The position numbers and the translations under genes are program-made. The notes beneath the pieces were generated by a model. The model searched no databases and was not told the origin of the DNA. It worked only from the letters and a program-made list of their open reading frames with translations. Positions 1,868 through 51,609 of a DNA stretch of 64,000 nucleotides are shown here, in pieces. Source of the DNA: Podarcis melisellensis (Eukaryota); assembly GCA_964234715.1 (NCBI GenBank), contig OZ174276.1; one strand, 5' to 3'. The stretch's first letter is position 1. Each line of letters opens with the position of its first letter.

Positions 1868-2001
1868 CAGGGGTCAGGGAACTTTTGGTTGTCTAGATGT
1901 TGCTGAACTAGAACTCCCATCAGTCCTAGCAAGCATGGCCAATGACCAGGGATGGTAGGAATTTAAGCAACAACTGGAGAGCAAAAGGTTCCCCTCACCT
2001 G
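1868..2001. mobile_element. Short (~130 bp) hAT-like MITE; related copies at ~19740-19865, 35495-35730, 37650-37745, 38820-38910, 39520-39630, 59790-59860
   Basis: CAGGGGTCAGGGAAC...GGTTCCCCTCACCTG termini, with an internal quasi-palindrome (aactcccatc...gatggtaggaatt) that recurs across the window. Confidence 0.55.
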
Positions 2002-5000: not shown

Positions 5001-6849
5001 CCACTGACACGATCTTCCCTGAGCATCCTTGCCTGCTTTGTGGGGCCTGCTTAGCTCCCTGGTGTACTCAAGAGTTTAGGGTGATGAAATAGATGGCTCA
5101 AACATGAGTGGAGGAAAACGTCAGACAAATGCAATTGAACACTGGTGAGGGCTCCGCGTTGATGCTACCTAGTGGCAGTGAAGAAGGCATACTTTGCTGC
5201 CTTCATTGCATCCTTGCTATGCCATCCAGCAGAGCTTTTCTGGGTAGTGCAAGGCCTCTTACTATCTGGCCCAAAGGAGGTGGCAAAGCCAAATGGTAGC
5301 TCGATGCGACTAGGGCTTCTCAGACCCTAGTGTCCCCAAAGATTGCCTGATACCTCTCTTTTCCCCCCTGGCAGGCTTCACAAAAGGCATCTCCACAGAG
5401 CCTTGCCAAGGAATGATGGCAAGAGTAACTGCCAGAACCTCTTTAAGGAACGTCAACAGGATCCTGACCTTGAACCTGAGAGTCTCTGAAAAGAGCTCTC
5501 TGGGGGAAGCGCCTGTGCATCCTAAAACCCTGGAGCCTATTAAGAGTTAATCACTGCAGTTATAAATGATCTGCAAGCATTTAAAGTCACTGAATAGCTG
5601 GCGGAGGGTGTGAAACACTGTTGCATTCCTATTAACTCCAAACAGCAGCTCTAAATCCAGAAAGTGGTGCCCAGATTTTCAAGACAATATTAATTTTACA
5701 CTTGGCACCACAGGAGAGCAAGAACAGCTGAGTTCACAAGGGGTCAGTCTAATAAAGAGACAGGGGGGGGATAAAAAAATGAAACCCCCTCAAGATTGAG
5801 CTCCCTTTCCCAGGCACGGAACGTCTCATAACAAAACAGGCTGCACAGGGTAAAGGGGAATTCAGCTTTGTAATGAGGGGTAACCAGCAGCAGGACTTGG
5901 GCCCTGCAGGAGATGTCAGATCCGTAGATACGGAGCATTAACAATGGCTATATCAGCAAGTTTAACACAGCTGTCATTATGGAATGAAGGGCATACGAGG
6001 GGGGATTGTCTGAAGTCGCGGGAATCTGTGGGCAAGAGGTTGAGTTTTGTCCCAGATTTAAAGGTGGCAAAAATCAACTCTGATGAAAAGTGCTTTTCCA
6101 CACATGCTGTAATTAGGCTTTGGAATGCGCCAGAGCAAAGGCTTTCAAACTGTGTAATTAGCACTGCTATGAAATGTGCTAAAATGGGCAGTTTTATACA
6201 TTTTTCCTCTCTGAGCCTCCCTCACAAGGAGGGAAGAAATGTCTGAGCTTTCTTTTCTTTAAAAAAAAAAGTCAGTATGTACTGATTCACACAACGGTGT
6301 TCCTAGTCAGAAAGCCACCTAGAGGTGGATTTTCCCCTTATGTGGTTGCAGGATAAAGAGGTCTTGTGAAAAGTACCTTCATACTGTTTTGCGTGTTTTA
6401 GCAACACAGGGAGGCGCATTCACAAGACTGCATTCTTGTCCTAAAAATGAGTGGCAAGCCTACCTCACAGTGCCCGATTGCCTTTAAAATTTGCCACAAG
6501 CACACTCACCCAGCACCCATTGGGAAGCCTTGTCTGGTTTTGCCCAGGGAAGGAGTTACTGGGAGGTGCAGGGGCTCATGCTCCCAATGGCGACTGGGCA
6601 GTAGATTGGCTTCTTAAGTTGGTTCCATCTCAACTTCTTCCTCTTTCTTCATTTGAAGCGCCCTCCTTCCCTGTATAATGTGGGCTTTGCTAGTTGTCTT
6701 TTACAGGGTTTTTAAAGGACTCCTCTTTCTCTCCTACTTCATATTGTCTAATAGGCTTTGGAATAACATACCTAGTGTTGAACTGGTTTAGTCTAGGCAA
6801 GTGAGGTAATTTGGACAAACCAGTTGGTTAAACTTGAGGCACTATTATA

Positions 6850-15142: not shown

Positions 15143-16881
15143 TAGCTGAGTCTTAGGAGAGGGATTATCTACCTTCAATAAGCACTGCTGTCCCTGATTG
15201 GACGGTATGCACAAACGTCTCCTCCTATCTCATCCCTCAAATGGGTGCATGTGAAATTGGCCCACACATGGCCGTCAAGGTAGTACTGGGGTGTAGACCA
15301 ACAGGGAAAGTGGGGTCAGACTGCGTCATTAGGCCAAAGCTTTACAGTGTAAACAATTTGCCCAGGAGGATGAAGAGCCAGGGAAGATGCTGGAAATGAA
15401 ATCCCCATGGCTATTGGTATCAAAAGGCTGAGGAACATGCTGCATGTGCCAGGGAGCATGCAGCCATGCTTCCTTCTAACCATTGGCAGTGCCCAAGCAC
15501 GATGGGTAACAGTCTGAAGGTACTGAGTATTTGGACAGTTTCTGAAGGCTAGGGATTAGATCTGACAGTAATCATATGAGTTACCATAGGAGGTGTTTGG
15601 CTCTGCATCATACATTGCATTCCCTTACAAAAAGGCATGTACCCTTCCTTTGAATTGCAGTGTGATTCCGCACTGCTGCCCCTGCACTTCAGACACAATC
15701 AGGTGAACACAGGTGTGGGAGCGGTTTTGTGAATCAACTTTCCTCTGCTCCTGCTGCCTTCCCCCCTCCTGGGATAGGGGGAACATTCAGGATGCACGTC
15801 CAATATTATAAAGAGCACATGTTCCATGTATCTTGTCAATGGATGCTGTGGTCAAGATATGAGAAATACCTGTGAATACTAACCATCCCCCAGCAGCCCA
15901 GTTATCTGTGCTCAGGATATTCTGTGAATATTTCAGCAAGGGTCATCATAGAAAAAAGAAGGCTATTACCCATTTGTATGTGCTCGTTCACTAAATATAT
16001 ACCAAATCTCCACCATCACCCAGATGTGGATCGTACATAATTAAAATAATAATAAAAGCTATGCCATTTTAAAACTCAACCAGACAGGAACCCTAGGAAT
16101 AAATTAACCCCATTGCAAAATGCAGCCGCTTTCACCAGGGGAATGTAAAGATGACGTGGTTGTGTTTATATTTGTCACTATTGAGTGGAAAGTGCAGAGA
16201 CAGAAAACCCCTCTAATATATGTGATGGAAGGGCACCACCCCATGGACAATTGGAGTATTTCATTCACTGCTATAATGTTTGTTGGCTATTCCATCCACC
16301 CCCTCATCCCGAATTTAAAAAAAATCAGAAATCAGTATTTTGTTTGCCTTTTACTTTTGTTTTCTTCTTCCATGAGTCACTCTTGCATTTAAGATTTTTG
16401 TAAGTCAATTTTACACTACGTTTCATGATAAAAGTCTACCAGGCTTGTGTGTTGAGCACACTGCTTTGTGGAAGTGAGTTGTGGGCAACTTAACAACCAT
16501 CAGGAGTGACGCCTCAATGTGCTGCATGGGGAAGAATTTGGGTATTAAACAGCAGGATAGAGTCTCACACGCACACCATTTGAACGGCAATGCCCTTTCA
16601 AAATATTTTATTACGAGGGCCGAAGGGGCCTTGGACCCTAGGAGTTGGCTTCTATTTGTGTCAGCAACACCTGTGCTGACTTAGTCATGTCCACAGAATC
16701 CAGCATCATGTTATTTTAGTTCCTTGGAATTTCATTATTTATTCTAATTTGGTGGATTTCATCTGTAAAGTTGGTTGACTGAAAAAGAGGGTTGAAAAAT
16801 GCTTAAAATAAACAACAATACCCCAATTTTCCCTTTCCTCATACCTCAACAGAACAAATTCCCATTTGAAAATCACATCAT

Positions 16882-18842
16882 GTTATTTATAACAGTCCTG
16901 GAAGTCCTTTTGTGCTCAATAAGGAATAATGAAATAATAAAAGGAGTAAGAGTCGGTCAAAATGAATATAAAGTTAAAGCCTTTGCCGACGACCTAGTAA
17001 TAACGATTGAAGACCCCCAAAATAGCTTAAATGAGGTGTTAAATGAAATTGACCAATTTGGTAGAGTGGCTGGATTTACGCTAAACAAGAGGAAAACCAA
17101 AATAATGGTTAAGAACATAGATCAAAGTCTGGTAGAAGAAATGCAAAGAGAATCAGGGATTGAAGTGGCTAAAAAGATAAAATATATAGGAATTTGGCTG
17201 ACCCCCAAAAATATCGACGTCTGATATATATACTTCAACTATATACCGGTGTGGAACGGCATCAAGAAAGACTTAGAAACTTGGAGTAGAATGAAACTGT
17301 CTTTTGGGGGCAGAATATCAACGATTAAAATGTGTGTGCTTCCAAAGACGCTATTTCTGTTTCAAACGATCCCTATAATCAGGGGAACAAGCGTGTTCAA
17401 AGAGTGGCAAAGAATGATTTCAAGATATATTTGGCAAGGCAAGAAGCCTAGAATACAATTTAAGTTACTAACAGATGCCAAAGAAAGAGGCGGTTTTGCC
17501 CTGCCGGACTTGAAACTATACTATGAAGCTTCTTGTCTCTGTTGGTTAAGGGACTGGATAAAACTAAAAAACAACAAACTATTGGACCTAGAGGGTTTCG
17601 ATAATAGATTTGGTTGGCACGCCTACTTATGGTTGGAGAAGAAGAAAACTCATAAGGGTTTTGATAATCATATTTTCAGGAGCTCCATATTAGAAATATG
17701 GGAGAGGTACAAAAATATACTGGAACCTAAAGTTCCGCACTGGTTGTCACCATTAGAGATATTGAGTGTAAAGAAAATTAATATGAGAGGAAATTGGATA
17801 ACTTATGGTGAGTTAGTAATGAAGCCATATGAACAAGTTAAAGAGTATGTGTATGATTGGTTGCATTATCTTCAGGTAAATGAAAAGTTCAAAATGGACC
17901 TCAAAGAGAGGGGATTTACAGAGAAAGAATCAAAATTTCAAATGGAGATAATTGATAATGATGTTAAGATATTGTCAAAAATGTACAAAATACTTTTGGA
18001 ATGGCAAACAAAAGATGAGGAGATAAAGTCGGTCATGATTCAATGGGCCAGAGATTTTGGTTATAATATACAATTGGATGATTGGGAAAAGGTATGGAAT
18101 GATAATATGAAATTCACTGCATGTACGGCGTTAAAGGAAAATATTATGAAAATGGTTTACAGATGGTATATTACACCCGTAAAGTTAGCAAAAATGTATA
18201 AAACATGTAATAAGTGTTGGAAATGTAAAGAAAAAGAAGGTTCATTTTTTCATATGTGGTGGGAATGTAAGAAGGTAAAGGGTTTCTGGGAAATGATATA
18301 CAATGAATTGAAAAAGATGTTTAAATATACGTTTGTTAAAAAAACCAGAAGCCTTTTTGTTAGGAATAACAGGAAGAGAGATAAAAAGATGTGATTATAA
18401 ACTGTTTCAATATGCAGTTACAGCGGCAAAAATACTAATGGCCCAAAAATGGAAACAAGAGGAACTACCGACCTTTACTGAGTGGAGAATGAAACTTATG
18501 GATTATGCAGAATTGGATAAAATGACTGGAAAAATTAGATATCAGAAAGATCACAAATTCATTGAGGACTGGGGAAAGTTTACGGAATATCTGAAAACTG
18601 TATGTGATGAACAGACAACGCTAGTGGGTTTTAAAGAGGCTTTGTGATAAACCAAGGTATATTGTAAGAAAGAAACTGAGATGGAAGGTTATTATCAAAT
18701 CAGCAATACTACATAGAAAATGTGTAAAGATATGAAAAATGGATGATTGAAGGAGGTACTGGTGGAAGTTCAAAAACTGTAAATTGGTAAACATGGTTGT
18801 CAAAATTATTTGTTAAAGAAAAACTTAATAAAAATTTATATA
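16882..18842 (+). mobile_element. 5'-truncated L1 LINE (ORF2 RT C-terminal half and Cys-rich domain), disrupted
   Basis: ORFs 16799-17224 (FADD RT motif), 17249-18394 (GGFALPDLKLYY; CWKC..HMWWEC) and 18333-18647; A-rich tail; 15-bp TSD TGAAAATCACATCAT at 16867-16881 and 18843-18857; one stop/frameshift near 17222 and one frameshift near 18340. Confidence 0.93.
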
Positions 18843-22680: not shown

Positions 22681-23431
22681 TTTGGGGAGAAGCGAGTGCT
22701 CTCTTTCTTGCGCTTCTACTTGCTCACATCAGTGGCCGACTAGAAACTCAGGCATCTGTGTTGCAGGCCTGACCTTAGTTTAAATCCCTAGCTGTGCTTA
22801 CTTAATTCTAATCTGGGTAAGTTTCCAGTCCTGTGTGTCACTGTGAAGGCTGACGTATGACAAAAGCCCCAAAGAGTTTTGCATGCAGACCTAGAACCAC
22901 TCTGCCTCATCTCAAACCCAGTGTATGTTTCATTTCTTCATATGAGAAAGAAGTTTTAGAGAAACAAGGTCACGATGCTTGGAATCACCCTCTTCTCGCT
23001 GCTGCTGCTGCTGCTGCTGCATAAAAACGTTATGTCCTCTCTGTTCAGATCCCTCTTGCTCGCTCTTTAGGAAATTGGTTTTATTTGTAGTAAATGGGGA
23101 AGCTGAGAGAACCAGTGCTTTCTGGTTGGGTTGGTGGGGTTTCCCTCCCTGCCTGAGTCTAGCTGAGTTAAAAAGTGAACGTTTTCAAGTTTCACTTGCT
23201 GCCACAGCTCAAGACTGCCATCACTAGAACATAGGCAGCAGCACTCAACCTGCTTTCCGTATCACTAACCAGGAGTGAACTGCAGACAGGCATTGTGAAG
23301 AGTGAGGCTCCTGAAATGAACATACGTAGCTCTCAAAACTAGCGATCCACCTCCCCACCCCTCCCCACCCCGAGCAGGAAAAGGGTGACTCACTGAACCA
23401 CTCTTTTTCTACTCCCCGCTCCCTTCTTTAG

Positions 23432-23484
23432 GTGTCTGAGTGTACAGGGGCCAGAGCAAGTTGTGCTATCTAAGTTCTTGACAG
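23432..23484 (+). other. Candidate non-coding 5'UTR exon of the HMGA-like gene
   Basis: Polypyrimidine tract + TAG acceptor (cccttctttag) and CAG|GTAAGC donor; next acceptor ..ccttctgcag at 24075. Confidence 0.4.
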
Positions 23485-24192
23485 GTAAGCTTCCTCTTTC
23501 TTCACCACCTTTCTGGGTCTGTATCTAAAATGCACATGTGGATTGCCTGTTAAAAGAAACTGGGAAGTCACCTTTGCCCTGATGCTGATCAGATGATTCT
23601 CTTAATGAATCTTTGGTACAGAGGGAGGGACAAGAAATAGTGTTAAAATGCTGCCGGTGATCCTGCCTAGTATACCCTCCTCTTTCAGATGCTTTTCTCT
23701 ATCTTCCTTGGGGAGGAAGCTTATTTTTGTTGAATATTTGGCCACTAGCCTGAGTTGCACAGAGCTGAAAAGTTCTTCTGCATAAACCCCACTGAATTGG
23801 CTACCTCCAGTTGGTTCCTCCATCATTTATGGTAGGTTGCTGTGTGGAGCCTTCTGTGGGAGCCATGCAGGAGAACATCCCTGAGCCCTTTGGAGCTAAC
23901 ACAACCCACAGATAGGAGCTGTTGAGGGCCTCCATAAAGACTTTGGGACTCGCTGAGGATGGAAGGAAAAGGTGGGAGAACATGATGATACTTTGTCCTA
24001 AGATTCTTCCGGTGGGGTATTGAAAGCCTCGAGGGGAGTGCCCAGTCAGATGTGCCTGCATTCCTCCTTCTGCAGCGTACAGCTGAGAACAAGCAGGGTA
24101 GAAGTGGGATTGTTCACTCCTGTTCCTTTAAAAGGCTGCAGCGTGGGAAAAACTATTGGCTGATCATCTCCAGAGGCTGGTGAAGTGCCGCT

Positions 24193-24285
24193 ATGAGCAA
24201 CATTGGGAAGCAGGCGGGACCAGGGTCCACTGTTCTGACCGAGCTGCCCAAACGAAAGAGGGGACGGCCGAGGAAGCAGCCGCAG
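24193..24285 (+). CDS. HMGA2-like AT-hook protein, coding exon 1 (MSNIGKQAGPGSTVLTELPKRKRGRPRKQPQ; AT-hook 1)
   Basis: ATG, RGRPRK AT-hook, CAG|GTAAG phase-0 donor at the position equivalent to HMGA2 ..RGRGRPRKQQQ|. Confidence 0.88.
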
Positions 24286-25774
24286 GTAAGCGTTCAGCCT
24301 CGGCGCTTTGCCTTCTCACCATGTTAAGATTTATAAGAAGGAAGCTGATGACAGTTTTTTAGGCATAAAGAAAGTGGTATTATTAGAATGACTAAACTTA
24401 GGTGTGACCCTCAAAACAGTTCGGCATGTCCAGAAAGCTCTAATGTTTGGGTTCAAGGGCTCTTTTTTCTACTAGGCAATACATTCTACTAGGCAAGAAA
24501 TTAACCTGTCTACTGTTAAGTGAGTGATTGGTTGATTGTTCAACCTTCGCTAAACTGGGAAAGGCATATCTAGCAGCATATCTTACAGCTTCAAAGAGGA
24601 GCGTGATTCATTTCTTCAGTATCAGCTGCTAATACTGAGTATGGTTGAGACAGCTGGGGCCACTTTCACAGGCATGTGAAGGGGCACATCTTATGTAGCC
24701 AGGGAGGTCTCCTTACCTTGAGAGATTGGCTGAAGATTAGAAAGGGAAGTCCAAAAGGTCTGGAGATGTCTCCAACCCCCATTCCTTCTTGAAACCAGGA
24801 ATTGGACTTTGTGCTGACTGGGGTTGGTGCAAGTTGTAGTAGAAAGCATCTAGAGGCACCAGGTTGGGGAAGTCTGGATGGCATCTTAACCTGACTTGCA
24901 GTCAGATTGAAATGCACTTAAATGCATCTCAGTTGGCAGGGCAATTGCTTTGTGAGCAAACTTGTACAGTTTAACATATGGATGGCAGCTGTAGTGCCAC
25001 CAACTTTTGGTGCTGTTTGTCCCTGGCCTGAGCAGTCAGAGCAACTTCCAGTCAGGAATTCCAGGTCTGCAAGACCCTGCCAATGCCACCAGCAAGAGTG
25101 GGACTATATCCCAGCTCCCTGGTATCCCTGGGTTTCTTCAGGCTTGCCAATGCTGGTGCACTTTGAGGAGGGAGGAGACTGTGAGGGTTAACATTGTGAG
25201 ACAAAATTAGGGATTGACTTCTGAATAATACTGGACTGCCAAAATGACCCTAAACATTTTGATGTGCAACATCAATGACTCAATTCTAGGTGGAGGGTGA
25301 CATATGTTTGTTTATCTGCTGACCTGTATGCCCTGGGAAATTTCTTTTCTCACCATAAACCTGTTTTTAAAGGGAACTGAAATTTACCAGTGATGCTCAA
25401 CAACATTTGCACTGCTCTTGCCCCATCTTGGAATGAAAATGAAGTTGTTCTCACAACATTCTCCTCAGAATTCTCTTTTGCAAATATCCATGTCAAATAC
25501 TCTCTTGAAGTTTCCTAGTCACTCAAATGTTCTCTCGATATTTGTGAGTTGATACACTGAAGCATTTGGATAGTAGTCTTTAAATATCTGACAGCATTGC
25601 TACACTTAGTATATAGTAGGGGTTTTCATTTTTTTTCAGGGAACACTTTCTATACCTGCCAAGGAACTGCTCCATGTTGCAAAGGATTCTGGGGCATGCT
25701 CTAGAGTTCATACTCCAAATGGAGCACAATTCACCTAACTCTCATGCACTGTTAGAACATCCTAGAATATATAC

Positions 25775-26033
25775 CATGGGTCAGCAACCTAAGGCCCATG
25801 GGCCAGAAGAGGCCCGCAGAGGTCGTTTGACCAGCCCACAAGCCGCCCCCGAACCAAGCCGCCTGCTCATGCACTGCGCTAAGTTGCTGCAGCGTGGTGC
25901 AGGGACTTGCTTCCGGGGCGTCAAAAATCGCGTACGTAGATGCCAAAAATCGCAGTCGTGCGCATGATCCAGCCCATGGAGGGACCTCCGCAGGACCAAT
26001 CCGGCCCAGGCAAAATAAACCTTGCTGACCCCG
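25775..26033. mobile_element. hAT-type MITE
   Basis: TIR-like CATGGGTCAGCAA / TTGCTGACCCCG; CpG-rich interior. Confidence 0.55.
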
Positions 26034-26081
26034 ATATACATAGTGTCCCCCTATTGCTGTACAGCACAGTAGAATATCAAT

Positions 26082-26396
26082 ACAGGGCCGGATTTAGGGT
26101 TGATGAGGCCCTAAGCTACTGAAGGTAATGGGGCCGTTTATATGTCCAGCTGTCCTTTGTCAACAACAAATTGTCACTGTTTTTTGTGTTGAATGTATGC
26201 TATATGGCAATTTATGGACCTAATAGGTATCTAAAGCCATTTTCTGTATGTAGATTTTATTTTATTTGTTTTTTATCTTATATTTTGGAAATGTACATCC
26301 AGGTGTTGTTGTTTTTACTTTAATTATTTTTTGGGGGGCCAAGATAGTGTGGCCCTAAGCTATAGCTTGTTTAGCTTATATGTAAATCCAACACTG
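26082..26396. mobile_element. hAT-type MITE
   Basis: TIRs CAGGGCCGGATTTA / TAAATCCAACACTG. Confidence 0.65.
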
Positions 26397-27783
26397 ATGA
26401 TGGACGAGGTGTTGTTTTTCTCATTGGGAAATCTTTATCTAGAACATTTATACCATGCTTTATATCCATGAAACCTAAGGCAGTATACAGCAATTTCCCT
26501 TGAAATCTCCCATCCAGGCACTAACCAGATCCAAAGATGCTTAGCATCAGTATCATGGCTATATCATTTGCCCTCAGTCCACACCAGCAAATTCTTAATA
26601 GGCTTCCAAAGCACCTCACCATTGCAAGAACTTAGCTTGCAATTCACTGCTTTGGTTGACAGTACTTGATGGTTGGCGAAGAATGAGTACTTGTGTTTTA
26701 TAGTCACTGTGCATGTCACTTTTTATCTCATAGAATTGTATGGATTACATGAAATGGTAATGAATAGCTGACAGTTGGTTGCATATGAAATTTTGGATTG
26801 CCAAAACTGAAACACTCCAGAGTTCTTAATCATTTGGGTTTTGCATGATGAGTTACAAATGTCACATATTCAAAGGCATATGCAAAATATTTTACTTTGA
26901 AATATCTTTATTCAAAATTATACATGATCTAAGTGGAACAATTGCCAAATTTCTAATCTTTGTAAATATTCATTTCACCTTTACTCCATGTTCATTTACA
27001 GCTATTCTTTCTCCCTCTCCTTTAATGATGTTTGTACTAGTTTTATTTATCCACTACTTCCTTTTTTCAAAAAAAAAATAATGTTAAGGTCTCTCTTCTC
27101 ATTGGAGGGCATTCATCATTCTCCCACAGAATGAAAACACTTGCATAATCACATCCCTATTTTATTTTAATTTATTTAAGCTTATATGATAAAAACTCTT
27201 AACATTTTGTCTTGGATTAAGGCATGGGCCAATTTGAATTCTGACAAACGCAATGCAAGGGCTGCATCCAAGTCATACTTGAGCATAGAAGCCAACTCCT
27301 AGGGGACAATGTCCCTTCAGGGGGCCCAATAAATTATTTGATCAATTGTGTGGGGCAGGGCTTACCTACCCCACCCCTCAATATTTTACTCAAGTTAGCA
27401 CCCTTGTACTTGGGGTAGCCCTACTGCAATCAATTAACTCAGCTAACTTAAATGATTTCTACTCTGAGTGTGACTTAGGCTGCAACCATAACCCTACTTA
27501 ACTGGGGAGTAAGCCCCACTGAAGTCAGTGAGACTTACTGTAGGTTAGGACTGTCCCTCCTTTTGCAGCTATCCATCTAAGAAATTGCAGTGGATATGAG
27601 CTGCTCCTTACTGTTTGTCCTGATAAAGAGCTCGTTGCGCAAAAGCACCTGGGTTAATAAAATTCCTGTTCGATTTCTGGTTGCTTTTGTTTTGTGCTGC
27701 TGCTGCTGCCCTTTTAATGTGTGTGAAATACACGATCTTTGCTCTGTACTGTACAAGTAAATGCCCCTTCCCTATCTGAACAG

Positions 27784-27867
27784 GAGCCTGTTGGGCCATT
27801 GCCACCAAAGAAACCTCGTGGAAGGCCAAAAGGAAGCAAAAAGCAGAGTGCTGGGAGTGGACAGATG
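27784..27867 (+). CDS. HMGA2-like coding exon 2 ([28 protein letters not shown]; AT-hook 2)
   Basis: CAG acceptor and GTAAG donor, phase 0/0; matches HMGA2 [21 protein letters not shown]. Confidence 0.9.
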
Positions 27868-27959
27868 GTAAGAACTAGTGACAGAAAGAGCTTTCATGCT
27901 GATTGGCACTCAACCCATATCCCCCGAGAAGGGAGAGAAGGAAGGTGTCCATCTTTATT

Positions 27960-28600
27960 ATTATTATTTTCAAAATTTTATTGACATTATTAGCACCTCA
28001 TTATTAGCTGGGCATTGCAGCATACCATATAAAAAGCTGATAAGCAATAAATTGTAAGAAAAGGAAATAGTAACACACCAATATAAATCAAGAAATTGAT
28101 ACTTCCTGAGCGGACATAGATGGCGACTATCGAGCATAAGAAATAAAATTCCACCAGATGGCACAGAAATATTCTGGATCCTCCAACCTCCTGGAAACTC
28201 ACAATTTGTGTGTGATTCCCCCCCATAGCCAAATTCTATAGGTTCTTATACCACACAGCCAAATGCAGATTTTTCAAGGTTTTCCGTTGCTAAGCTATTA
28301 AAATTCCAGCTGCAGCTAACATCCAAGTCAGGAGCTCTTTAGAGCAACAAGCTCTCATGTTGTCCATCTATATATTCAATAATAACAGTTACTAGGAAGC
28401 CTGAACAGGTGATTTAATTATTTTAGTTATTTTTTGGTATGCTTGGGACCAGAATAATGAAACCCAAGGGCATTCCTGCCAAAGACTGAAGAATAACCTC
28501 ACCAGCAATGCTGCATTAATTGTGATGTAATATGTACCCATCTTTAAGCATTTGGCATCCTCTCATTCCTATAGCTTTAGAAATGATTAAATTCACATGC
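27960..28600 (-). mobile_element. Old L1 3' fragment
   Basis: T-rich tail on +; decayed ORF2 C-terminal-like sequence on -. Confidence 0.4.
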
Positions 28601-29625
28601 AAATTCCATGCAGCCTAGAAGCCTCCTTTAATTATCTACCACCTCTGCATAAATATATTTCACCAGCTGCAAACTCAACATCGTCTCCCTTGGGCAGCTG
28701 CTGTTGTCCAGTTGTTTTTCATAATTCTCCACTACTGTAATATAAATCACTGCCAGGTTCCTTTGAGCTGCCCCCTAGTGGATTAAATTGCATTAAAGAG
28801 CTCAGTTGCCATTGTGTAACAAATCCACTTTTTAAAAGAGGTGGTGGGTTTGCAGTTAGGAAAGTGACAGGGAAATGCACAGAAAAGTGTGGGATAGATG
28901 AATGATGAAGGGGAAGCCACATAATCACTGTGCAAGCAAACCAAGATGAATTCAGAATGAATGCTCAGGAAAGACCCGACATAGGCTAGCCTCTGCTAGG
29001 GACGACATGTCTCGTTTTGGTGCTTGAGGCAAAATGCACTGCACCACCTGCATCGACCTAAGCATCTTCAGCACCTTCCTATCTGTTGCCAATAGCTTAC
29101 TTAGAGAAGGACCCATAGCTCGTGGGTAGAGCATCTGCTTAGAGGGTTATAGATTCAATTTCCAGGGAAGGCGGGCAAAGACCCTGAAACAGGTGTGTAC
29201 CTAGGAGCTAGCCAGGTTGGCCCCACCAAGGGCGCAAGCACAGAGGGACACAAAAACCATACCTCTCCACTCTGGCTTGGAGTGACTAGGAGCTGGAACA
29301 CCTGCCTGTGCGCTCCCTGAGCTGCTCCTCTGTTGCTTTGGGCAGCCAACATTGCTTGCCAAGGCCACAAAGGGGAGGGGGCGATGATACAGCTCCTTGC
29401 CAAGATGTAAGGGAGCCTAGGGAGCCTCTGATTGGAAAATCTTGAGAGTTGCTGCCAGTCAGCATAGGCAATAATACTGAACTAGATAGACCATTGGTCT
29501 GACTCTATATATGGCAGCTTCCTCAATTTGTTTGTTCTGTCAGTGGTTTCCCAGTCATCTTCTTAATGCTCATGCTGTCACATATCACTGTTTATCTTTC
29601 AGTGTGGCCTCTTTCCAAAGAAATC

Positions 29626-29637
29626 TCACACACACAT

Positions 29638-29697
<60 letters not shown>
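29626..29697. repeat. (CA)n(GA)n compound microsatellite
   Basis: Direct reading. Confidence 0.95.
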
Positions 29698-29698
<1 letters not shown>

Positions 29699-29799
29699 CA
29701 CTGCACTTTGAGGGGGAAATGTAGAGTTTCTCATTCCTTTGCTTCAGTGACCACCTGTTGACTAATCAGAAGGTTCTTTTTGTTTCTCCATTATTGCAG

Positions 29800-29847
29800 G
29801 TACACACCTCGGTTGAAAAAAGGCCCAGGGGTCGACCACGGAAATGG
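29800..29847 (+). CDS. HMGA2-like coding exon 3 (VHTSVEKRPRGRPRKW; AT-hook 3)
   Basis: Polypyrimidine tract + CAG acceptor and TGG|GTAAGT donor; matches HMGA2 ..GEKRPRGRPRKW| including the terminal Trp. Confidence 0.92.
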
Positions 29848-30205
29848 GTAAGTTAAATGGAATAAAAAATGCCTTTTTAAAAAAAAAAAAAGTGGCACCT
29901 GATGTTCCTAAAGACTGATCACAGAAGCCTGGGATCAAGTTACATCTGGGGAGTGACCAAACTCTGGGGAGAGGACGAACTAGCACATCCATTCAAACAG
30001 CATATTTGGGTCATTTGAAATTGCTCCTCATCAATAATGCCATGAAATGTGCGAGATCAGCTCGCATGATTGAGAACAAACTTTAGTATCAACCAGCGAA
30101 AAGAATGAGCCTGAAATCTTGAGGCAAGCCACTGTGCTACTGATGGATGGACCAGGAGCCAGTCTATTCCAATAGCCTAATGGAAAATGTTGCCCTCCAG
30201 ATGTT

Positions 30206-30331
30206 CATAGAATTGTAGAGTTGGAAGGCGCCCCAGGGGTCATCTAGTCCAATCCCCTGCAAGGCAAGAATCTCAACTAAAGCATCCATGACAGATGGCC
30301 ATACGACCTCTGCTTGAAAACCTCCAAGGAA
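30206..30331 (-). mobile_element. CR1-type LINE 3' end running into an assembly gap; a similar piece lies at ~33750-33900
   Basis: catagaattgtagagttggaagg..tcatctagtccaatcccctgc is a typical CR1 3' terminus. Confidence 0.65.
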
Positions 30332-30476
30332 NNNNNNNNNNNNNNNNNNNNNNNNNNNNNNNNNNNNNNNNNNNNNNNNNNNNNNNNNNNNNNNNNNNNN
30401 NNNNNNNNNNNNNNNNNNNNNNNNNNNNNNNNNNNNNNNNNNNNNNNNNNNNNNNNNNNNNNNNNNNNNNNNNNNN
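30332..30476. other. Assembly gap (145 N)
   Basis: Run of N. Confidence 1.
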
Positions 30477-30695
30477 CGCCTTTCACTCCCCTTCAGGAGT
30501 CTCAAAGCGGCTAACATTCTCCTTTCCCTTCCTCCCCCACAACAAACACTCTGTGAGGTGAGTGGGGCTGAGAGACTTCAGAGAAGTGTGACTGGCCCAA
30601 GGTCACCCAGCAGCTGCCTGTGGAGGAGCAGGGAAGCGAACCCGGTTCCCCAGATTACGAGACTACCGCTCTTAACCACTACACCACACTGGCTC
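30477..30695 (-). mobile_element. tRNA-derived squamate SINE (Squam3/MIR-like)
   Basis: Reverse strand begins AGCCAGTGTGGTGTAGTGGTTAAGAG (A box), then GGTTCGCTTCCC (B box) and a CORE-like GGGTGACCTTGGGCCAGTCAC. Confidence 0.7.
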
Positions 30696-31975
30696 TGGTT
30701 CACAAAGACACAAAGGCACAGGTTCCCCAGTGTTGATCTACATGCGGTTTAAATTCCATTTTTTACCATCACCCCTTAGCAACCAAGAAAACAGCTGCAG
30801 TCCTAAACACACTTATTTGGGAGTAGGCTCCACTGAACATAGTAGGACTTGCTTCCAAGTAAATATGAACAGGCTTGCCCTAAGATTCTTCATCAGTTAG
30901 TGCCCTAATTGCATTAGTCCTTTTACTTTGGGCTCTGTGACAATTGATCTATGCTCCTATATGGAGATGGAAGCTGTTTTTCAACAACGGAACCTAGTAA
31001 TCTATTTAAAATTGTATCACCACCACCACCACCCATTTCTAGTATTTCAGTAAATTGGTTAGCTCCTATCACCTGTGCATAGAGATCTCTTATTCCGGAA
31101 TGGTCAAGGCAACTTGCAGTTTTAAAAATTGTAAATAATACCCCATACTAAAAATACAGGAGGCTGTTTGCTAAGTATTCAGAACCGTCACAGTGACTAG
31201 CAGCAAGACACCTGCTGACATAGGCTGGCCTGTGGTTAAACTGCCAGCAACACAGAGAGGGGGAAAGGCTCCGTCATGACTCACACAACATAGCTTTGCA
31301 ACTGTATATCTGATACACTGCTGGAGACAATGTGGAATCTGAAGCAGAAGGAGAGGTTTGTTACCATAATACCTAAGCCTAGGTCATGTCCACACCATGC
31401 ATTTAAAGCACAGCATAGGAGGGGTTGGAAGGACAGGTAAGCAAAGGGATGCAGAACAGGAGTGCCAACTTGGCCCCGAAGTGTGGGTGCCCGGGGCCAT
31501 GGGTGCCATACAATGTGCATGGCCCTGGCAGCAAAATTTGTGGGTGCCCAGCCCATTCATGGGGAATTTTGTGGGTGCCCAGGGCCTCAGGGAGTTGGCA
31601 CCTATGGTGCAGAAAGTGGTGTTTTGGCGAGGTGGGTAGGTGGGTTTGGTGAGCAAAGAGCTTAGTGGGGAGGAATGAGGGTTTGGCAATGTGTAGAGAT
31701 GGTTGGCAAGCAAAGCAAGCAGGGTCACAGCCCCTATCAGTGTCACAGGGCCATCAGAAGAGCCCCTAGTGGATCAGACCAAAGGCCCACCTCATCCAGC
31801 CTCTTGGGGCTGCTATGGGAAGCCAGAAGCAGAACCTGGGTGCAACAGCCCTCTCTCCATGTGTCATTCTCAGCAACTGTTACTAAGCGGCATAATAGGG
31901 GCAGAAAGAGCCATAATGGCTAGTAACTGTCAATAGCCTTATCATTCATGTCAGATGCTTACATTTCTCTTGCAG

Positions 31976-32063
31976 CTTGTCGTCCAGGAGGAAGAATTTC
32001 AGAAACCTAGCATTCAAGGGAGAAGCAACCCAAGTTCTAATACATCGTGCCCTGCCACAGAAG
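31976..32063 (+). CDS. HMGA2-like probable coding exon 4 (LVVQEEEFQKPSIQGRSNPSSNTSCPATE)
   Basis: Acceptor catttctcttgcag; VVQ matches HMGA2 exon 4 PQQVVQKK; AAG|GTTTGT donor (phase 1). Confidence 0.55.
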
Positions 32064-33620
32064 GTTTGTGGAATTCAAGTGGGGCTTCTGCAGATAACAT
32101 GAGAATCAGCCCTCACATAAACGGGGGTGGAGGCACCATAGTGCATTGAAGGAAGCCGCTCATCATTTTTTGTTGTTGTTGTTAAGGCTTGAAGTTAAAA
32201 GGGAGAGACAGAAGAGGTGTCGCCCTGCTGCCTGTTAGGTTGTTTAATCATGTGATGTATGAAGTAAGCTGGTGACTGACAAGCACTGCCTTGATTTCTA
32301 AGAAAGTTGATGTAGATGCCGCCTGATAAATGCCAGGGTGTTTAACCTCACTTGTTTGAGTCCATTTCCTCTCCGACTTATGCTGCCGTATCATTTCCCG
32401 CCTCTAAGGCGCATGGTGATGTCAGCTACAGCCACAGACTCCTTTGTGATGGCCTCACTTCCTGCCCAGTTCTGTGTCAGGTTTGCATGGTAGGCAGCTC
32501 CTTTGTGCCACTTAAAACCACGGCTGCTGCGGGTTGCGCTTTCCCCTTCTGCTTAGGATAGCAGCATTTATGCGGCACCTCCTGTCCTGTGCCATTTGAG
32601 AAAACATAGATGCAAAAGGGTGAAGCAACAGAGTGAGTATTGGGAAAAGATGACCCGTGCCAGATGGGCCCATTTATTGAGCAATTGCCCTGATTGTTTT
32701 GCACAGGGTTTATACAGTGTCACCATCAAGTGGCATCTGCCAGTGCTTTTCCTATTAGTACTTTTCTTACCACAGACAAATCCTGTGGGCGGGGTGGGGG
32801 TAGAGGGTTGAAAACAGGTTTGTTGTGCAAGAGCACCTCAGTGCTGTTGCTTGCTTGCAATGCACCTGCTTTCTTGGGGGGTTAGGAAGGTGCACTTTAT
32901 AATGGACATATCACTAGCATCTTCCCAGATGGGTGAGAGATGTATGCCAAAAGGCTGATAGTCTGTAAGCGAGATATATAACCCAACCGATCCAGCACAG
33001 ATCTGTTTTTAACCAGGTGGTCAAGGCCAACTCAAGGGGTACCACCCAATGAGGCCCTTCCAACACTCTCACACACCCCTATTGCAGGCACTGCAGCTTC
33101 CTGGCTGGCAACCAACACCTTCCTGTCATTGAACATGGATGGGTCAGAGGGCCAAGTACCAGCCAAGTAGCTTCAGGGCATTTGGACCAAAGCAGTTGCC
33201 TGACAATGCTGTGTGTTGCCTTGGGCTGTAGCTGTAATCCCGTGCTCATTTCCCCACTGAAATAAATGGAGCTTAGCCAGCCAAACTGTGCAGGTGTTGC
33301 AGCCTATGCAGTGAGGTCAGAAAGAGTGGAAAGGTTTCCCTGGAAGGTGACCTTTAGTCCCTTTGCCGATTTCCCCCTACTACATTGTGCTGGGAGACAC
33401 ATTTGGTTCAAGTGCGGCAATGCCCCACAGCCCTATTGGCAATATTCCATCAGAACTGGCTGTGCTCCCAATAGCATGCACCGCTGCTCCAGAAACTTCT
33501 GTCATTCACAGGAGTTCCTCCTTAGCAGACATTTCAATGATGAAAGAGTTGCCTGAAGGAGGAAAGTTTTAGGGGGAAAGCTATTGTTTTAATGTACTCT
33601 TTGTCTCATGCTTTCTTTAG

Positions 33621-33721
33621 GCACATCTGGAAAAGGATGTCACAGGATCAACAGAAGTACAGAACCCAGTAGATCGTTGGACACCTCTCCAGCTGTGGTT
33701 CAGCAGCAGACGGCTTGTTGA
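33621..33721 (+). CDS. HMGA2-like candidate terminal coding exon (GTSGKGCHR...QQQTAC*)
   Basis: Acceptor ctttctttag, phase-1 compatible, stop TGA 33719-33721, AATAAA at 34215 and 34233; no homology support. Confidence 0.4.
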
Positions 33722-42369: not shown

Positions 42370-43516
42370 TTTTATTTCTATGCAAAAGCTTAATTCGAAG
42401 CATGCAGAGCAATAGTAAAGATTTCTTCTGAGCATTTGTGAAGCATTTCTCCCTCATCACTTTTTAACACAACATTATTTTTTCAGAACTCTGAGAGTTG
42501 CAGCCAATATAGGTTCCACTCTGTATCATATTGACTTCAATACTTGCTTTACATTAAATGAAGGCAGAAGGTAGGTTAGGATCTAATGGATGATTGCTGG
42601 CTATTTGCAGTAGATTAGCAAGGTTTTAGTATTCTCAAGGGTGAAACAGCAGCAGCAACAACAAAGACTCTTTACTCCCACAAATTTTGTTGCTGCAAAG
42701 TATTTTTTTTATCGGGGGGCAGGAGGGGAACCAGGCATGTATTTTTGAGTGAAAGAACTTACAAGTTTGGTTCTGGTGCTGATCGCAAATTCCTGGGCTG
42801 AGCTTCCAGCCGGCCTGAGTTACTATTTTACACCCAACTGTTATTGGGGAACCTCACAGTGCTAGTAATAATAATAATTTTTAAAAAACCACCACACACC
42901 CCCCCCAAAGGAGATTCTGCAGGCCTGGTCACCCCTGCTTTACATGCATGAGATGCCAGGTTCAATCCCAGAAACTTAAAGAATTTATGTCTGAAGAATT
43001 GTATCTTAAGCCTTGGAGATCCACTGCCAGTCAAGAGCAGGCAATACTGGGTTATGTGAACCAATGGTCTGCAGTATAAAAGCAGTTTCACACATTTAGG
43101 ACAAGGATTATAGGGCCATTACAACTACCATCTAAACAGTTCAGCTGAACAAATGAATCTTCCAGGTGTCTCCTGCATTCAGGTTCCACTCAGTTCATTT
43201 TATTAGCATTAGAGGTTGCAATCCTTTGTGCACTTACTCAAAGCAGCTCCCATTGAAATCAGAAAGTTGTGTGTATGTGCGCACGCACGCACACATATTG
43301 TTGCAATAACTTCAGCTAATCCTTCATAATCACTTACAGAAACCTTTTAATTTTGGCACTAAAATTGATCACAAATTCTAATCCCATATATGTACTTTGA
43401 AAAAGGGGGAAAGAGTCATGGCTTCAGAAGGAAAAGCAGCACAGAAAATCTTCTTCTAACCTGATGTGGGTCTAGCCTGCAGCCATGCAAGCAGAGATGA
43501 TCACAATATCCCTTTA

Positions 43517-43771
<255 letters not shown>

Positions 43772-43908: not shown

Positions 43909-44675
43909 TGTCAGGGTTTCTGGGAGAGAGGAGGAGATGACAGAGGAGACGGAGAGCGAGTGGGAGGAGGGGCAGAAGGATGAGGAAGAAGATGACGGAA
44001 TTCTGAGGGAATCCACGAGTCTGAGCAGCGAGTCAGAGGATTCTCAAAAGGGGGTTACCTTAATCAAGCAAAGGGGAGGAGAAGGGAGAAGCGGAGAGGA
44101 GCCCAGTGGAAGACAGAGGAAGCAAGAGACGTCTCAGCCGGAACGGAGTAAAGGGGGTGGAGTCGTCAGCCTCTCGGAGGGAGCAGGATTAGGAGAGAAC
44201 AGAGAGAGGGGGTTGGAGCAGGGTGTTCAGCCGGAAAGGGTGGAGAGCAGAGCAGGGGGTGGTGTAGCGGTCGAAAGAAAGGTCAGCAGCAACGTACGCG
44301 CGCCAAGTTCAAACGTAGAGGCGCGCGGAAGTGGAGAGAGCTCAGGGGAGGAGCCCGGCCCTAAAGCCAGAAAGAGGGGGGAAGAGGCGGCAGAGGATTC
44401 AGCCTCAGGCGAGTCACGGAGAGAGGGAACCCAGGGGGGCAGGAAGACCCTGCGGAAAAGAAAGGAGAGGAAGAGGTGGTCTAGAGCCAGGCTATTAAGT
44501 TGGTGCGGAAGAGGGGAGGAGTCAGAGGGGACTTCAGCGGTCTAACGTGGCAGACGTACGGCCACAATGCTGAACTGTATGAGAAGCAGAAATCTTCAAT
44601 AAACTTTTCCTGTAAATAAGCTGCAACGGAGTGAGGTCTCTTGTGAGCTGGGACCAGTCCTGGGTGGCCGTGACA
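43909..44675 (+). repeat. 5' LTR (767 bp): U3 43909-44523, TATTAA 44493-44498, predicted TSS 44524, AATAAA 44598-44603
   Basis: Direct repeat of 49636-50402 with no differences seen by eye; TG..CA ends. Confidence 0.97.
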
Positions 44676-44677
44676 GT

Positions 44678-44688
44678 AAGTCCCCTCT
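44678..44688 (+). promoter_or_regulatory. Self-priming primer-binding site (AAGTCCCCTCT)
   Basis: Exact reverse complement of AGAGGGGACTT at 44524-44534; no TGG-starting tRNA PBS present. Confidence 0.85.
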
Positions 44689-44735
44689 CAGAAAGCAAAA
44701 ATTTTTTTTTGCGAAGCTCACGAACGGGAGCAGCC

Positions 44736-45812
44736 ATGAGCGCTGAGGAGCAGCTGGTTGCATTGCGGAATCAGGTTACCGCTCTCACATCGGCAGTCAT
44801 TGCTTCGCAGAAGAAGAATGACGACTTGGAGAAGACGTGCCAGGATTTGCAGGCAAGGTGGGAGCGCGCGGACAAGGCGGGGGCCCCAGGATCCAGAGCG
44901 GAGGGCATTGCGCTTGGACGGAGGGGGGGTGCCCTAGTTCCGCATTTTAATGGCAACTTGCAAGACTATCCCAATTTCAGAGCGGACGTTGTATATGCAC
45001 TGCACTTACTCCGTCACGATTTTAAAGATGAGGAGGAGAAAGTGGGGTTCATTGTTTCGCACCTGCATGGGGAGGCCAGGGCTTGGCTACGCAATTTGTG
45101 GCGCGAAGATGGACCGGCCCGTCGCGATTCAACTGCGTTCATCAAAGCGATGGATTCTTGTTTTCAATCCTCTGTGGATGTGGACATTGCGCGCCGTCAA
45201 ATGCACGGGCTGAGGCAGGGGAAAGCGACTGTGCGCCAATACCACTCTAAGTTTTTTGCATTGCTCACCGCCTTAGATTGGCCAAAGGACAGTAAGCCGG
45301 TCAGAGATCTTTTTTGGGAGGGATTGAGCCCCCCCATCAAGGATGAGATCGCTAGGGGGGACAGACCCCAGACCCTAGAAGACGTGGTGCACCGGGCTTT
45401 AGCTATTGGAATTCGACATGAGGGGCGTCCGTGGCACGAGGAGGACGGGCCCCAAGCGCGTGCGCAAGCAAGGACTCTCCCTTTTGTGCACAGGGACTTC
45501 AGCCGTGCGCACCCCTCGCCAATGGGGAAGGACAGAGAGGAGCCAATGGAGATTGGTGGTGCTAGGGCTCAGAAGCCATCCCAGAGCCCTGTCCCTGGTG
45601 CAGCCAAGGCGAAGCCTCCTAGAGGAACCAGGAAGTGTTACATCTGTGACAGTGCGCACCATATGGCGAAAGAGTGCCCCCAGAGGCTCCAGAAGCACAC
45701 TGCAGCGCTGGCAACTGTAACAGCAGAGGTGCAACCAGGGGAGCAGCTTCAGGGAAACGACAATGCCTGGCTGGAAGCAGAGCTACTGGGGCTCAGCCAG
45801 GCGGATCTGTAG
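44736..45812 (+). CDS. gag: Gag (358 aa): coiled-coil N-terminus, retrotransposon capsid, EPMEIG motif, CCHC zinc knuckle
   Basis: gccATG Kozak context at 44736; CYICDSAHHMAKEC = CX2CX4HX4C; LRQG and FWEGL capsid motifs. Confidence 0.95.
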   Translation: MSAEEQLVALRNQVTALTSAVIASQKKNDDLEKTCQDLQARWERADKAGAPGSRAEGIALGRRGGALVPHFNGNLQDYPNFRADVVYALHLLRHDFKDEEEKVGFIVSHLHGEARAWLRNLWREDGPARRDSTAFIKAMDSCFQSSVDVDIARRQMHGLRQGKATVRQYHSKFFALLTALDWPKDSKPVRDLFWEGLSPPIKDEIARGDRPQTLEDVVHRALAIGIRHEGRPWHEEDGPQARAQARTLPFVHRDFSRAHPSPMGKDREEPMEIGGARAQKPSQSPVPGAAKAKPPRGTRKCYICDSAHHMAKECPQRLQKHTAALATVTAEVQPGEQLQGNDNAWLEAELLGLSQADL

Positions 45813-45824
45813 ACAAGCCCCCAG
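45752..45824 (+). promoter_or_regulatory. -1 programmed ribosomal frameshift signal (G GGA AAC + H-type pseudoknot)
   Basis: Slippery heptamer 45752-45758 in the gag frame; 6-nt spacer; stem GCCTGGCTG(45765-73)/CAGCCAGGC(45794-802); loop GGGGCT can pair with AGCCCC(45816-21); pol is in the -1 frame. Confidence 0.9.
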
Positions 45825-50272: not shown

Positions 50273-50402
50273 CGTGGCAGACGTACGGCCACAATGCTGA
50301 ACTGTATGAGAAGCAGAAATCTTCAATAAACTTTTCCTGTAAATAAGCTGCAACGGAGTGAGGTCTCTTGTGAGCTGGGACCAGTCCTGGGTGGCCGTGA
50401 CA
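49636..50402 (+). repeat. 3' LTR (767 bp); U3 is translated in the Pol frame
   Basis: Direct repeat of the 5' LTR; the Pol stop TAA 50270-50272 lies inside it. Confidence 0.97.
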
Positions 50403-50572: not shown

Positions 50573-51375
50573 CTAGAAAAGCAGAAAGTTGTTGTAAGTA
50601 CTGGAGAAACCTTTTCACACCAATTCCTAGGAAAAAACAAGTGCTGTATACTCTTTGGCATGCAAAATTGCATTGAGTTCAATGGGGCTTACTCCTAGGA
50701 AAGCAGGTGTAGGATTGGGGCATTCGTGTACACTCATGCATGCTAGGAAGAACTAGTTGGAAACCCAATTTACTTTACCTCAGTAAGAGGTAACTCAGTA
50801 ACTAAGAGAGCAATCCTAGACATGCATAATCAGAAGGAAACCTCACTCCCAAATAAGCCCATATTGGATTGCAGCTTAATTTACAGTGCAACCCTTGGAA
50901 GTACCAGTAAGTCACACTGTGTTCAACGGGCCTTACTCTCAGGAAAATATGAATGGGATTGCAACCTTAGGCTGCAACCCTATACACATGCTTACCTTGG
51001 AGCAAGCCCCATTGAGTGCAGCATGACTTACTTCTGGGTAGACATGCACTGGCTTGCACGTCATCTCTGAAGCCAACCCTATAGCTAGACTTAATAATTA
51101 TTCCCTTTTCCTAGGAAATGGCAGTTCTGTGCTTTTGGAGAGACGGGGTGTTTTGGGATCTCTAACAGAGGATTTTAAACACCCAAATGAGAAAATAATT
51201 CCCAGGGTCCTTCGGTAAAAAGCCATGCCATTTAAACTGATATATGATCCAGGTAGACTGGCACCCAAGGACTGGCCCAGTCTTAGGCATTTTTGTACCC
51301 TGCTTGAAATATTATAGTGGAGCTCCTGAACTAAGCAGCCCTCCCGTAGGAACCACATGGCAGACACCGTCTTAC

Positions 51376-51609
51376 CATAGCAACAGCCAACCCAATCACA
51401 GTGATGATGCCGAAGGACAGCAGCATGGTCCCCATGCCAGAACCATTGCCAGCCACATCTGGAATTTTGGTGCTGTTAAAGCTGCTGGTTTCAGGGGTCA
51501 GCGTAGCAGTTTCTGATCCAGCCCCGTCCACAGTCATCCCATGGTCTGGCTCGGAAGTGCGAGTGCCACTGTGGTACAAAGTGTTCGCAGTGGATGTGCT
51601 ATAATTCAT
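51376..51609 (-). CDS. C3orf18: C3orf18 coding exon 1 (MNYSTS...GTMLLSFGIITVIGLAVAM, transmembrane segment); exon extends to an acceptor at ~51769
   Basis: GTMLLSFGIITVIGLAVA is identical to the human TM segment; GTAAG donor. Confidence 0.95.

Follow-up and report, generated by a model that had tools for sequence, protein, structure and literature searches.

A C3orf18-linked HMGA gene in the lizard Podarcis melisellensis, probably an old third paralogue of HMGA1 and HMGA2

How many HMGA genes did the ancestor of jawed vertebrates have? A 2020 review of HMGA evolution gives vertebrates two of them, Hmga1 and Hmga2 (PMC7013770, section 4). We have analyzed a stretch of 64,000 nucleotides (nt) from the lizard Podarcis melisellensis (contig OZ174276.1, hereafter the window) in which an earlier note, made from the letters of the sequence, had recognized an HMGA gene at 24193-33721 (plus strand), tail-to-tail with C3orf18. 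The note proposed that it was a third HMGA copy left by the vertebrate genome duplications and surviving in squamates, and named a phylogeny and the co-transcription of its exons among the checks to be made. The locus thus raises the questions of whether this is a working gene, whether it is distinct from HMGA1 and HMGA2 and how old it is. Our analysis indicates that it is probably a functional third HMGA paralogue, neither HMGA1 nor HMGA2, linked to C3orf18 and orthologous to the 'hmga2b' of fish and the 'HMGI-C-like' proteins of sauropsids and monotremes, the gene pair having been copied together, as one block, before sharks separated from bony vertebrates, most likely in the two rounds of genome duplication (2R).

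Exon-by-exon translation gave a five-exon gene with a coding sequence of 414 nt (137 codons plus stop) that spans 9.5 kb from start codon to stop codon, the ends given in the earlier note being exactly these two codons. Coding exon 1 (24193..24285, 93 nt, 31 amino acids (aa)) opens with ATG, carries AT-hook 1 (KRKRGRPRK) and closes with ..RKQPQ. Exon 2 (27784..27867, 84 nt, 28 aa, EP..PRGRPKGSK..GQM) carries AT-hook 2 (KKPRGRPKGSKK), and exon 3 (29800..29847, 48 nt, 16 aa, ..EKRPRGRPRKW) carries AT-hook 3 with a Trp directly after it (KRPRGRPRKW). The three hook exons are all in phase 0 with clean splice sites, as had been claimed, and each has one PRGRP/KRGRP core, i.e., the three R-G-R-P hooks within ~100-140 aa, one per exon and with conserved phase-0 boundaries, by which an HMGA gene is recognized. 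Exon 4 (31976..32063, 88 nt, 29 codons plus 1 nt) codes for a short QEEE patch and a Ser/Asn-rich stretch, and exon 5 (33621..33721, 101 nt, 2 nt plus 32 codons and the stop) for a net-basic, Ser/Thr-rich C-terminus that ends at the TGA at 33719-33721. All splice sites are canonical, with donors of good GT consensus (CAG/gtaagc, ATG/gtaaga, TGG/gtaagt and AAG/gtttgt) and acceptors that in every case consist of a polypyrimidine tract followed by cag or tag. The introns rule out a retrocopy, in agreement with the earlier note.

The model is reproduced in other species. Compared with the orthologue of Lacerta agilis (P0001), exon 4 is identical at 27 of 29 positions (residues 76-104) and exon 5 at 30 of 32 (residues 106-137). 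The sole run of N in the window, an assembly gap at 30332..30476, lies inside a repeat in intron 3, between exons 3 and 4, and is flanked by SINE-like (short interspersed element) sequence; because P0001 is contiguous over the boundary of these exons, with W75 (end of exon 3) directly preceding L76 (start of exon 4), a coding exon hidden in the gap is excluded. Exon 2 has 78-79% identity with its counterpart in pigeon and turtle, the boundary of exon 1 is common to the pigeon, turtle, paddlefish, minnow and lamprey loci, the phase-0 boundaries of the hook exons to those of pigeon, turtle, minnow, paddlefish, whale shark and lamprey, and the 48-nt exon 3 is found also in pigeon, turtle and caecilian. 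The Pfam AT_hook model matched three stretches of P0001 (27.1 bits, cut-off 17.4); on the single exons of the window the search gave no AT_hook match beyond that of exon 1, which at 15.9 bits is under the cut-off.

Is the gene transcribed? Two runs (X1 and X2) provided contigs of a close relative lizard, not provably this species, and their RNA label is a guess. Record 1 of X1 (635 nt) contains positions 24100-24282 directly abutting 27781-27866, i.e., the junction of exons 1 and 2 with a 3-nt 'cag' ambiguity, record positions 427 and 428 being adjacent. As it covers 24100-24282 unbroken and continues beyond the stretch compared, it also gives the minimum extent of the 5' untranslated region (24100..24192, plus strand). 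The X1 depth in the bin 29700-29899 equals the contig depth multiplied by 48/200, as expected for the 48-nt exon 3 in the same contig, and record 8 of X2 gives the same junction of exons 1 and 2 by depth arithmetic. Both runs cover exons and have zero depth in the unique intron bins, while the contigs of two DNA runs (X3 and X6) continue through the introns. In these contigs exons 1 and 2 are spliced together, exon 3 following by depth, which supports for the hook exons the co-transcription that the earlier note wanted checked. The junctions of exons 3 and 4 and of exons 4 and 5 are taken from orthologous gene models.

Two other features were observed close to or inside the gene. A conserved non-coding element at 23149-23534, 0.7-1 kb upstream of the ATG, has 66% identity over 391 nt to the turtle locus (L004, 205-566) and 77% over 87 nt to the pigeon locus (L003, 4089-4175), where its counterparts precede the orthologous start codon by 6-10 kb; it may serve the HMGA gene as promoter or enhancer, or be one of its non-coding exons at the 5' end. 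In intron 4, a possible alternative terminal exon (32426-32494, plus strand) has a tgtcag acceptor and, read in the phase of exon 4, gives ATATDSFVMASLPAQFCVRFAW followed by a stop, which matches the C-terminus of a Zootoca isoform (P0002).

To which proteins is it related? The query was region 10-50 (which holds exon 2) of the window open reading frame (ORF) at 27739-27981, and later P0001 and other orthologues served as proxies in the alignments, the profiles and the tree. The exon-2 search gave 28 proteins, the named ones all being 'HMGI-C-like' or 'uncharacterized' and from squamates and birds. A profile of 15 of these proteins (A1) recovered this gene from Lacerta, Zootoca, Sceloporus, Rhineura, Pogona, snakes and geckos, in many bird orders, in turtles (Mauremys, Pelodiscus, Dermochelys) and in Alligator; scores were 96-221 bits for squamates, birds, turtles and alligator and dropped to ~80 or less for echidna and true HMGA2. 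When a second profile including echidna (A2) was run against 1.84 billion representatives, just 7 clusters were found at E<=1e-30, all of them sauropsid or echidna, and the next small protein was the HMGA2 of Anolis with 88 bits. Over alignments of 15-17 species the hooks are invariant, the N-terminus and the tail vary, and tail motifs are kept between lizards and birds. Outside amniotes, the best candidate orthologue is the cyprinid 'hmga2b', together with the 'HMGI-C-like' proteins of paddlefish, coelacanth, sharks and chimaera. The survival proposed for squamates is not limited to them, since sharks, bony fish, birds, turtles, alligator and echidna have the gene too; these database sequences suggest that the C3orf18-linked HMGA occurs across gnathostomes, with therians as the group without an annotated copy. 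The suspicion that it would be in databases as an uncharacterized model was right: it was found only as 'HMGI-C-like', 'uncharacterized' or 'hmga2b'.

Among amphibians, 'HMGI-C-like' database proteins were found in caecilians only (Geotrypetes, Rhinatrema). Frogs have in database proteins only HMGI-C proper, and have kept C3orf18; from this distribution, anurans may be a second, independent loss of the C3orf18-linked HMGA.

The gene is not the HMGA2 of its lineage in a new position. In another lizard of the same family, Zootoca vivipara (rather than in P. melisellensis itself), HMGI-C proper (P0119, P0122) is on a contig of 72 Mb and the HMGI-C-like protein (P0002) on one of 123 Mb, and separate HMGI-C/HMGA2 and HMGI-C-like proteins, on different contigs, were found also in Anolis sagrei, Erythrolamprus, Lathamus and Coturnix. 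A translocated, sole HMGA2 of the lineage, which the earlier note had listed as a refutation, is ruled out by these separate loci, and a duplication restricted to lacertids is ruled out by the orthologues in birds, turtles, echidna and fish. A protein tree was built from 49 proteins over 85 columns; neither it nor the alignments include the HMGA2 isoforms of mammal type that were among the search hits. In this tree, the HMGA1 of birds, a salamander, sturgeon and sharks formed a separate clade with 100/99 support.

The neighbour of the gene provides a second line of evidence. The window has C3orf18 on the minus strand, in tail-to-tail arrangement as described before and with ~9.8 kb between both genes. 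Its last coding exon, the motif exon, is an ORF at 43514..43690 that matched the C3orf18 of pigeon, turtle and minnow by tblastn (E 7e-15 to 9e-19), and its first coding exon, at 51373..51609, ends in a transmembrane helix (..GIITVIGLAVAMV) and matched minnow c3orf18 (E 1.4e-10). Pfam gave no match on these exons, the local copy being one without PF27898 (C3orf18_N). An HMGA-like gene tail-to-tail with an opposite-strand PF27898 gene was found in echidna (L001), pigeon (L003) and turtle (L004), and in the fathead minnow Pimephales promelas (L005) the gene tail-to-tail with the PF27898 gene c3orf18 is precisely hmga2b. The C3orf18 exons of the window matched the pigeon, turtle and minnow loci with tblastn E values of 1e-10 to 9e-19; at the echidna locus, where the sequence obtained ends within the C3orf18 gene, there was no tblastn match and the pairing is given by the Pfam label. 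The neighbour in minnow is 79% identical over the motif exon, vs 42% for the neighbour of HMGA1. In the cloudy catshark (Scyliorhinus), the 2b-type HMGA is scyTo_0007251 and C3orf18 is scyTo_0007250, on the same contig of 390,037 bp; by these consecutive locus tags on one contig, both genes are adjacent. Weaker hints of adjacency are the near-consecutive accessions in gar (W5NAB2, W5NAB5) and in Pelodiscus. The pairing is therefore kept well beyond the window.

Upstream of hmga2b in the minnow locus (1-5603) there is a gene with PAN, Kringle and Trypsin domains, HGF- or MST1-like. MST1 is at human 3p21, and if the minnow gene is MST1 the conserved neighbourhood would extend further.

The same arrangement is found a second time at HMGA1. 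Two falcon assemblies have a small gene 1.1-1.9 kb downstream of HMGA1 (P0260), on the opposite strand, whose product (101 aa, locus L009) carries PF27898. Its exons reproduce the pattern of C3orf18: a transmembrane helix closing with ..AMV, a short basic exon and then RFDRLRHRLLPMYSYDPAEE..EQELL, with the RLRH.L.PMY..DP motif. By BLASTP the motif exon matched the C3orf18 of the window (E 5e-9) and of shark (E 3e-7), and the transmembrane part is collinear with C3orf18 without being significant alone. From its position and length this is presumably SMIM29, the neighbour of HMGA1 at the human locus. The word search with the last exon of C3orf18 found 153 proteins of the family, and no named SMIM29 was among the 120 matches listed (C3orf18 fragments only). 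An HMGA gene tail-to-tail with a C3orf18-family gene is a pair present twice in one genome, as the earlier note had supposed from the HMGA1 locus, and a neighbour co-duplicated in the same orientation, as an ohnologue from 2R should have, is seen in the window, echidna, pigeon, turtle and minnow on one side and at falcon HMGA1 on the other.

How old is the C3orf18-linked copy? Among sharks, hmga1a was found in Heterodontus and Rhincodon, an HMGA2-type protein in Stegostoma (P0167) and the 2b type in Rhincodon (P0171) and Scyliorhinus (P0213), i.e., three HMGA types when shark species are pooled, not all in one, so that all paralogues are represented in cartilaginous and in bony vertebrates, again as 2R ohnologues should be. 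By comparison of the loci, the C3orf18-linked copy existed before the teleost-tetrapod split and, by the catshark locus tags, before the split of cartilaginous and bony vertebrates. Its origin in the 2R genome duplications is plausible and the timing fits. Other families that may link human 3p21, 6p21 and 12q14 are RASSF1/RASSF3, USP4/USP15, LEMD2/LEMD3 and ITPR1/2/3.

Several results count against a third paralogue of this age, or at least make it less secure. Apart from the separation of HMGA1, the tree gave no branching order: bony-vertebrate HMGA2 (88/78), the amniote clade (72/75), the caecilian 'HMGI-C-like' proteins, fish 2b and lamprey form a polytomy over the 85 columns, and the approximately unbiased (AU) test rejected neither the grouping of amniote, caecilian and fish 2b proteins as one clade (p 0.40) nor that of the amniote clade with tetrapod HMGA2 (p 0.21). 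Since the tree and the AU tests do not decide, the orthology with fish hmga2b and the dating of the gene depend entirely on synteny. No neighbour was seen in the 10-kb flanks of the HMGA loci of paddlefish, whale shark, caecilian and lamprey, and tblastn gave no C3orf18-like exon there, which makes these loci uninformative. The falcon neighbour is called SMIM29 from its position and length, and PF27898 was not in the local Pfam copy. No therian orthologue was found among the A2 hits of up to 265 aa, a search of annotated or predicted proteins in which therian DNA was not searched. The transcript evidence, finally, comes from the contigs of a relative under a guessed RNA label, with the last two junctions outside the contig comparison.

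These weaknesses leave space for other explanations, of unequal merit. Both HMGA + C3orf18-family pairs could derive from an ancient segmental (block) duplication unrelated to 2R, in which case the gene would be an old third paralogue and not an ohnologue. The duplicated block as found has two genes only, the tree gives no branching order, and HMGA2 is without a C3orf18-family neighbour in any locus that could be read, all of which would suit this origin. However, elasmobranchs already have each of the three HMGA types, so the duplications fall in the period usually assigned to 2R, and we regard such an independent block duplication as unlikely. A more recent event, i.e., a duplication of HMGA2 in tetrapods or amniotes whose product came to lie next to C3orf18 and shares its position with fish hmga2b by coincidence, would agree with the AU test that keeps the amniote clade with tetrapod HMGA2, and with the Trp after hook 3 and the PQ.VVQ-like start of exon 4, common to HMGA2. 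It would require that an HMGA gene was inserted twice, independently, at one site and in one orientation, in itself very improbable, because the tail-to-tail partner in the cyprinid is C3orf18 proper, far closer over the motif exon than the neighbour of HMGA1, and the catshark locus tags are adjacent; furthermore, the bony-vertebrate HMGA2 group leaves the amniote clade out (88/78). We give this possibility very little credit. Even harder to believe is a lizard copy without function, whether a relic in decay or an artefact of annotation. Evolution is indeed fast in the tail and in the first 19 residues of the N-terminus, and of seven differences in exon 1 from a related lizard (run X6) six are amino acid changes by codon reading. 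Against this, the frame of 137 codons is intact over five canonical exons, the hooks are invariant in squamates, birds, turtles, alligator and echidna, there is a spliced transcript contig, and motifs of the tail are kept from lizards to birds.

The part of the protein in which it departs from its family is the tail. Exon 4 codes for 4 acidic and 2 basic residues and exon 5 for 2 acidic and 4 basic, so by composition the window gene lacks the acidic C-terminal tail characteristic of HMGA proteins. Amniote tails have 45-63 aa (~60 in sauropsids, 45 in echidna) and a net charge of +1 to -5, those of HMGA1 and fish HMGA2 ~20-35 aa and -6 to -14, and fish 2b tails are intermediate. A GK(G/D) and R(R/S)SL stretch of the tail is kept from lizards to birds.

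These characters are consistent with the following scenario for a third HMGA paralogue. The product would be a small, intrinsically disordered architectural chromatin protein with three AT-hooks and a Trp after the third. Its three RGRP cores would insert in the minor groove where DNA is AT-rich, bending chromatin or opening it for other factors; we infer this binding because the cores are invariant and spaced as in HMGA2. A block duplication older than the shark-bony vertebrate split, most likely part of 2R, would have doubled an ancestral pair of HMGA and a C3orf18-like gene, and therians would later have lost the C3orf18-linked copy, unless it has been left unannotated in them. In amniotes, the acidic tail by which HMGA1 and HMGA2 have their DNA binding damped would have been replaced by a nearly neutral, Ser/Thr-rich tail of ~60 aa, and from the loss of this damping tail the protein is predicted to behave as a naturally tail-less HMGA under different regulation. 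Taken to its full extent, i.e., jawed vertebrates ancestrally with three HMGA genes, the third a 2R ohnologue that was already a neighbour of C3orf18 when the lineages of sharks and bony vertebrates parted and has remained so, lost in therians and provided in amniotes with a neutral Ser/Thr tail and with no let-7 sites in the 10 kb after the stop, this would describe an HMGA that is tail-less by nature and independent of let-7, with a biology as yet unstudied. We put forward this complete picture tentatively, with slightly more doubt than belief.

The remaining features of the window lie outside the HMGA gene. The C3orf18 intron contains a full-length Ty3/gypsy-type long terminal repeat (LTR) retrotransposon (44000-50300, plus strand) with a pol ORF of 1532 aa and a gag-like ORF of 393 aa, which accounts for the GC-rich stretch of the composition profile. 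An exon at 58799-59059 (plus strand), head-to-head with C3orf18, is likely the first coding exon of HEMK1, which we take it to be from the motif ..EYIVSHVLGAKT.., with a weak Pfam match to PrmC_N (E 0.083). An element of the non-LTR type (long interspersed element, LINE) lies upstream of the HMGA gene, with three reverse-transcriptase-like ORFs (141, 381 and 104 aa; 16799-18647, plus strand).

We have found no description of a C3orf18-linked HMGA in the literature searched, where 'HMGA3', the name suggested in the earlier note, is either a plant gene or a typographical error. The gene is undescribed there, yet it is already in public annotation as automatic models, and its protein fits without difficulty in a family already known. 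Much work on development, body size, stem cells and cancer has gone into HMGA1 and HMGA2, with two HMGA genes in vertebrates as the working picture. If there is a third, ancient and widely retained paralogue, results from non-mammalian models would have to be read differently. In that case, knock-downs of hmga2 or hmga1 in chicken, lizard or zebrafish may be buffered by the third HMGA. As an old vertebrate duplicate apparently missing from therians, the gene would also be a clean example of its kind, its tail-neutral amniote protein a natural experiment on the role of the acidic tail, and the duplicated HMGA + C3orf18/SMIM29 pair a compact marker for reconstructing the paralogon.

How does this gene compare with the HMGA genes already known? 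The earlier note called it HMGA2-like, which is correct for the hooks, the exon boundaries and the Trp and does not extend to the tail, the amniote protein being without the acidic one. Like HMGA2, it has three AT-hooks, one per phase-0 exon, with exon 1 closing ..RKQ(P/Q)Q, exon 2 opening with E and exon 3 closing ..KRPRGRPRKW, the Trp after hook 3 and an exon 4 that opens with a (P)Q.VVQ-like stretch. Unlike HMGA2, the context of hook 2 in the group of the window gene is GPLPxKKPRGRPKGSKK, vs GEPSPKRPRGRPKGSKNK in HMGA2, the linker between hooks 2 and 3 is without SKAAQKKAEATG, and the nearly neutral amniote tail of ~60 aa (net +1 to -5) differs from the fish HMGA2 tail of 27-34 aa with a net charge of -11 to -14. 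The span of 9.5 kb and the neighbour C3orf18 also set it apart, intron 3 of HMGA2 being very large. The 3' untranslated region of HMGA2 has multiple let-7 sites, and no let-7 seed match was found in the 10 kb downstream of the stop of the window gene.

With HMGA1 it shares a small three-hook protein and, judging from falcon, a tail-to-tail neighbour that codes for a single-pass membrane protein of the C3orf18 family, whereas HMGA1 has no Trp after hook 3, a third hook of the form GRKPRGRPKK and a short, strongly acidic tail. The closest likeness is to the fish 2b genes ('hmga2b' or 'HMGI-C-like'), which have C3orf18 as neighbour (Pimephales, catshark) and the same exon boundaries, an MSN start being common to several fish 2b and amniote proteins. 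Fish 2b genes differ from the amniote ones in having an exon 4 of 33 nt, a moderately acidic tail (net -6 to -9) and GPPTPKRPRGRPRGSKNK as the context of hook 2. The name 'hmga2b' wrongly suggests a duplicate of teleosts only; this meaning of the suffix is contradicted by the shark, coelacanth and paddlefish sequences.

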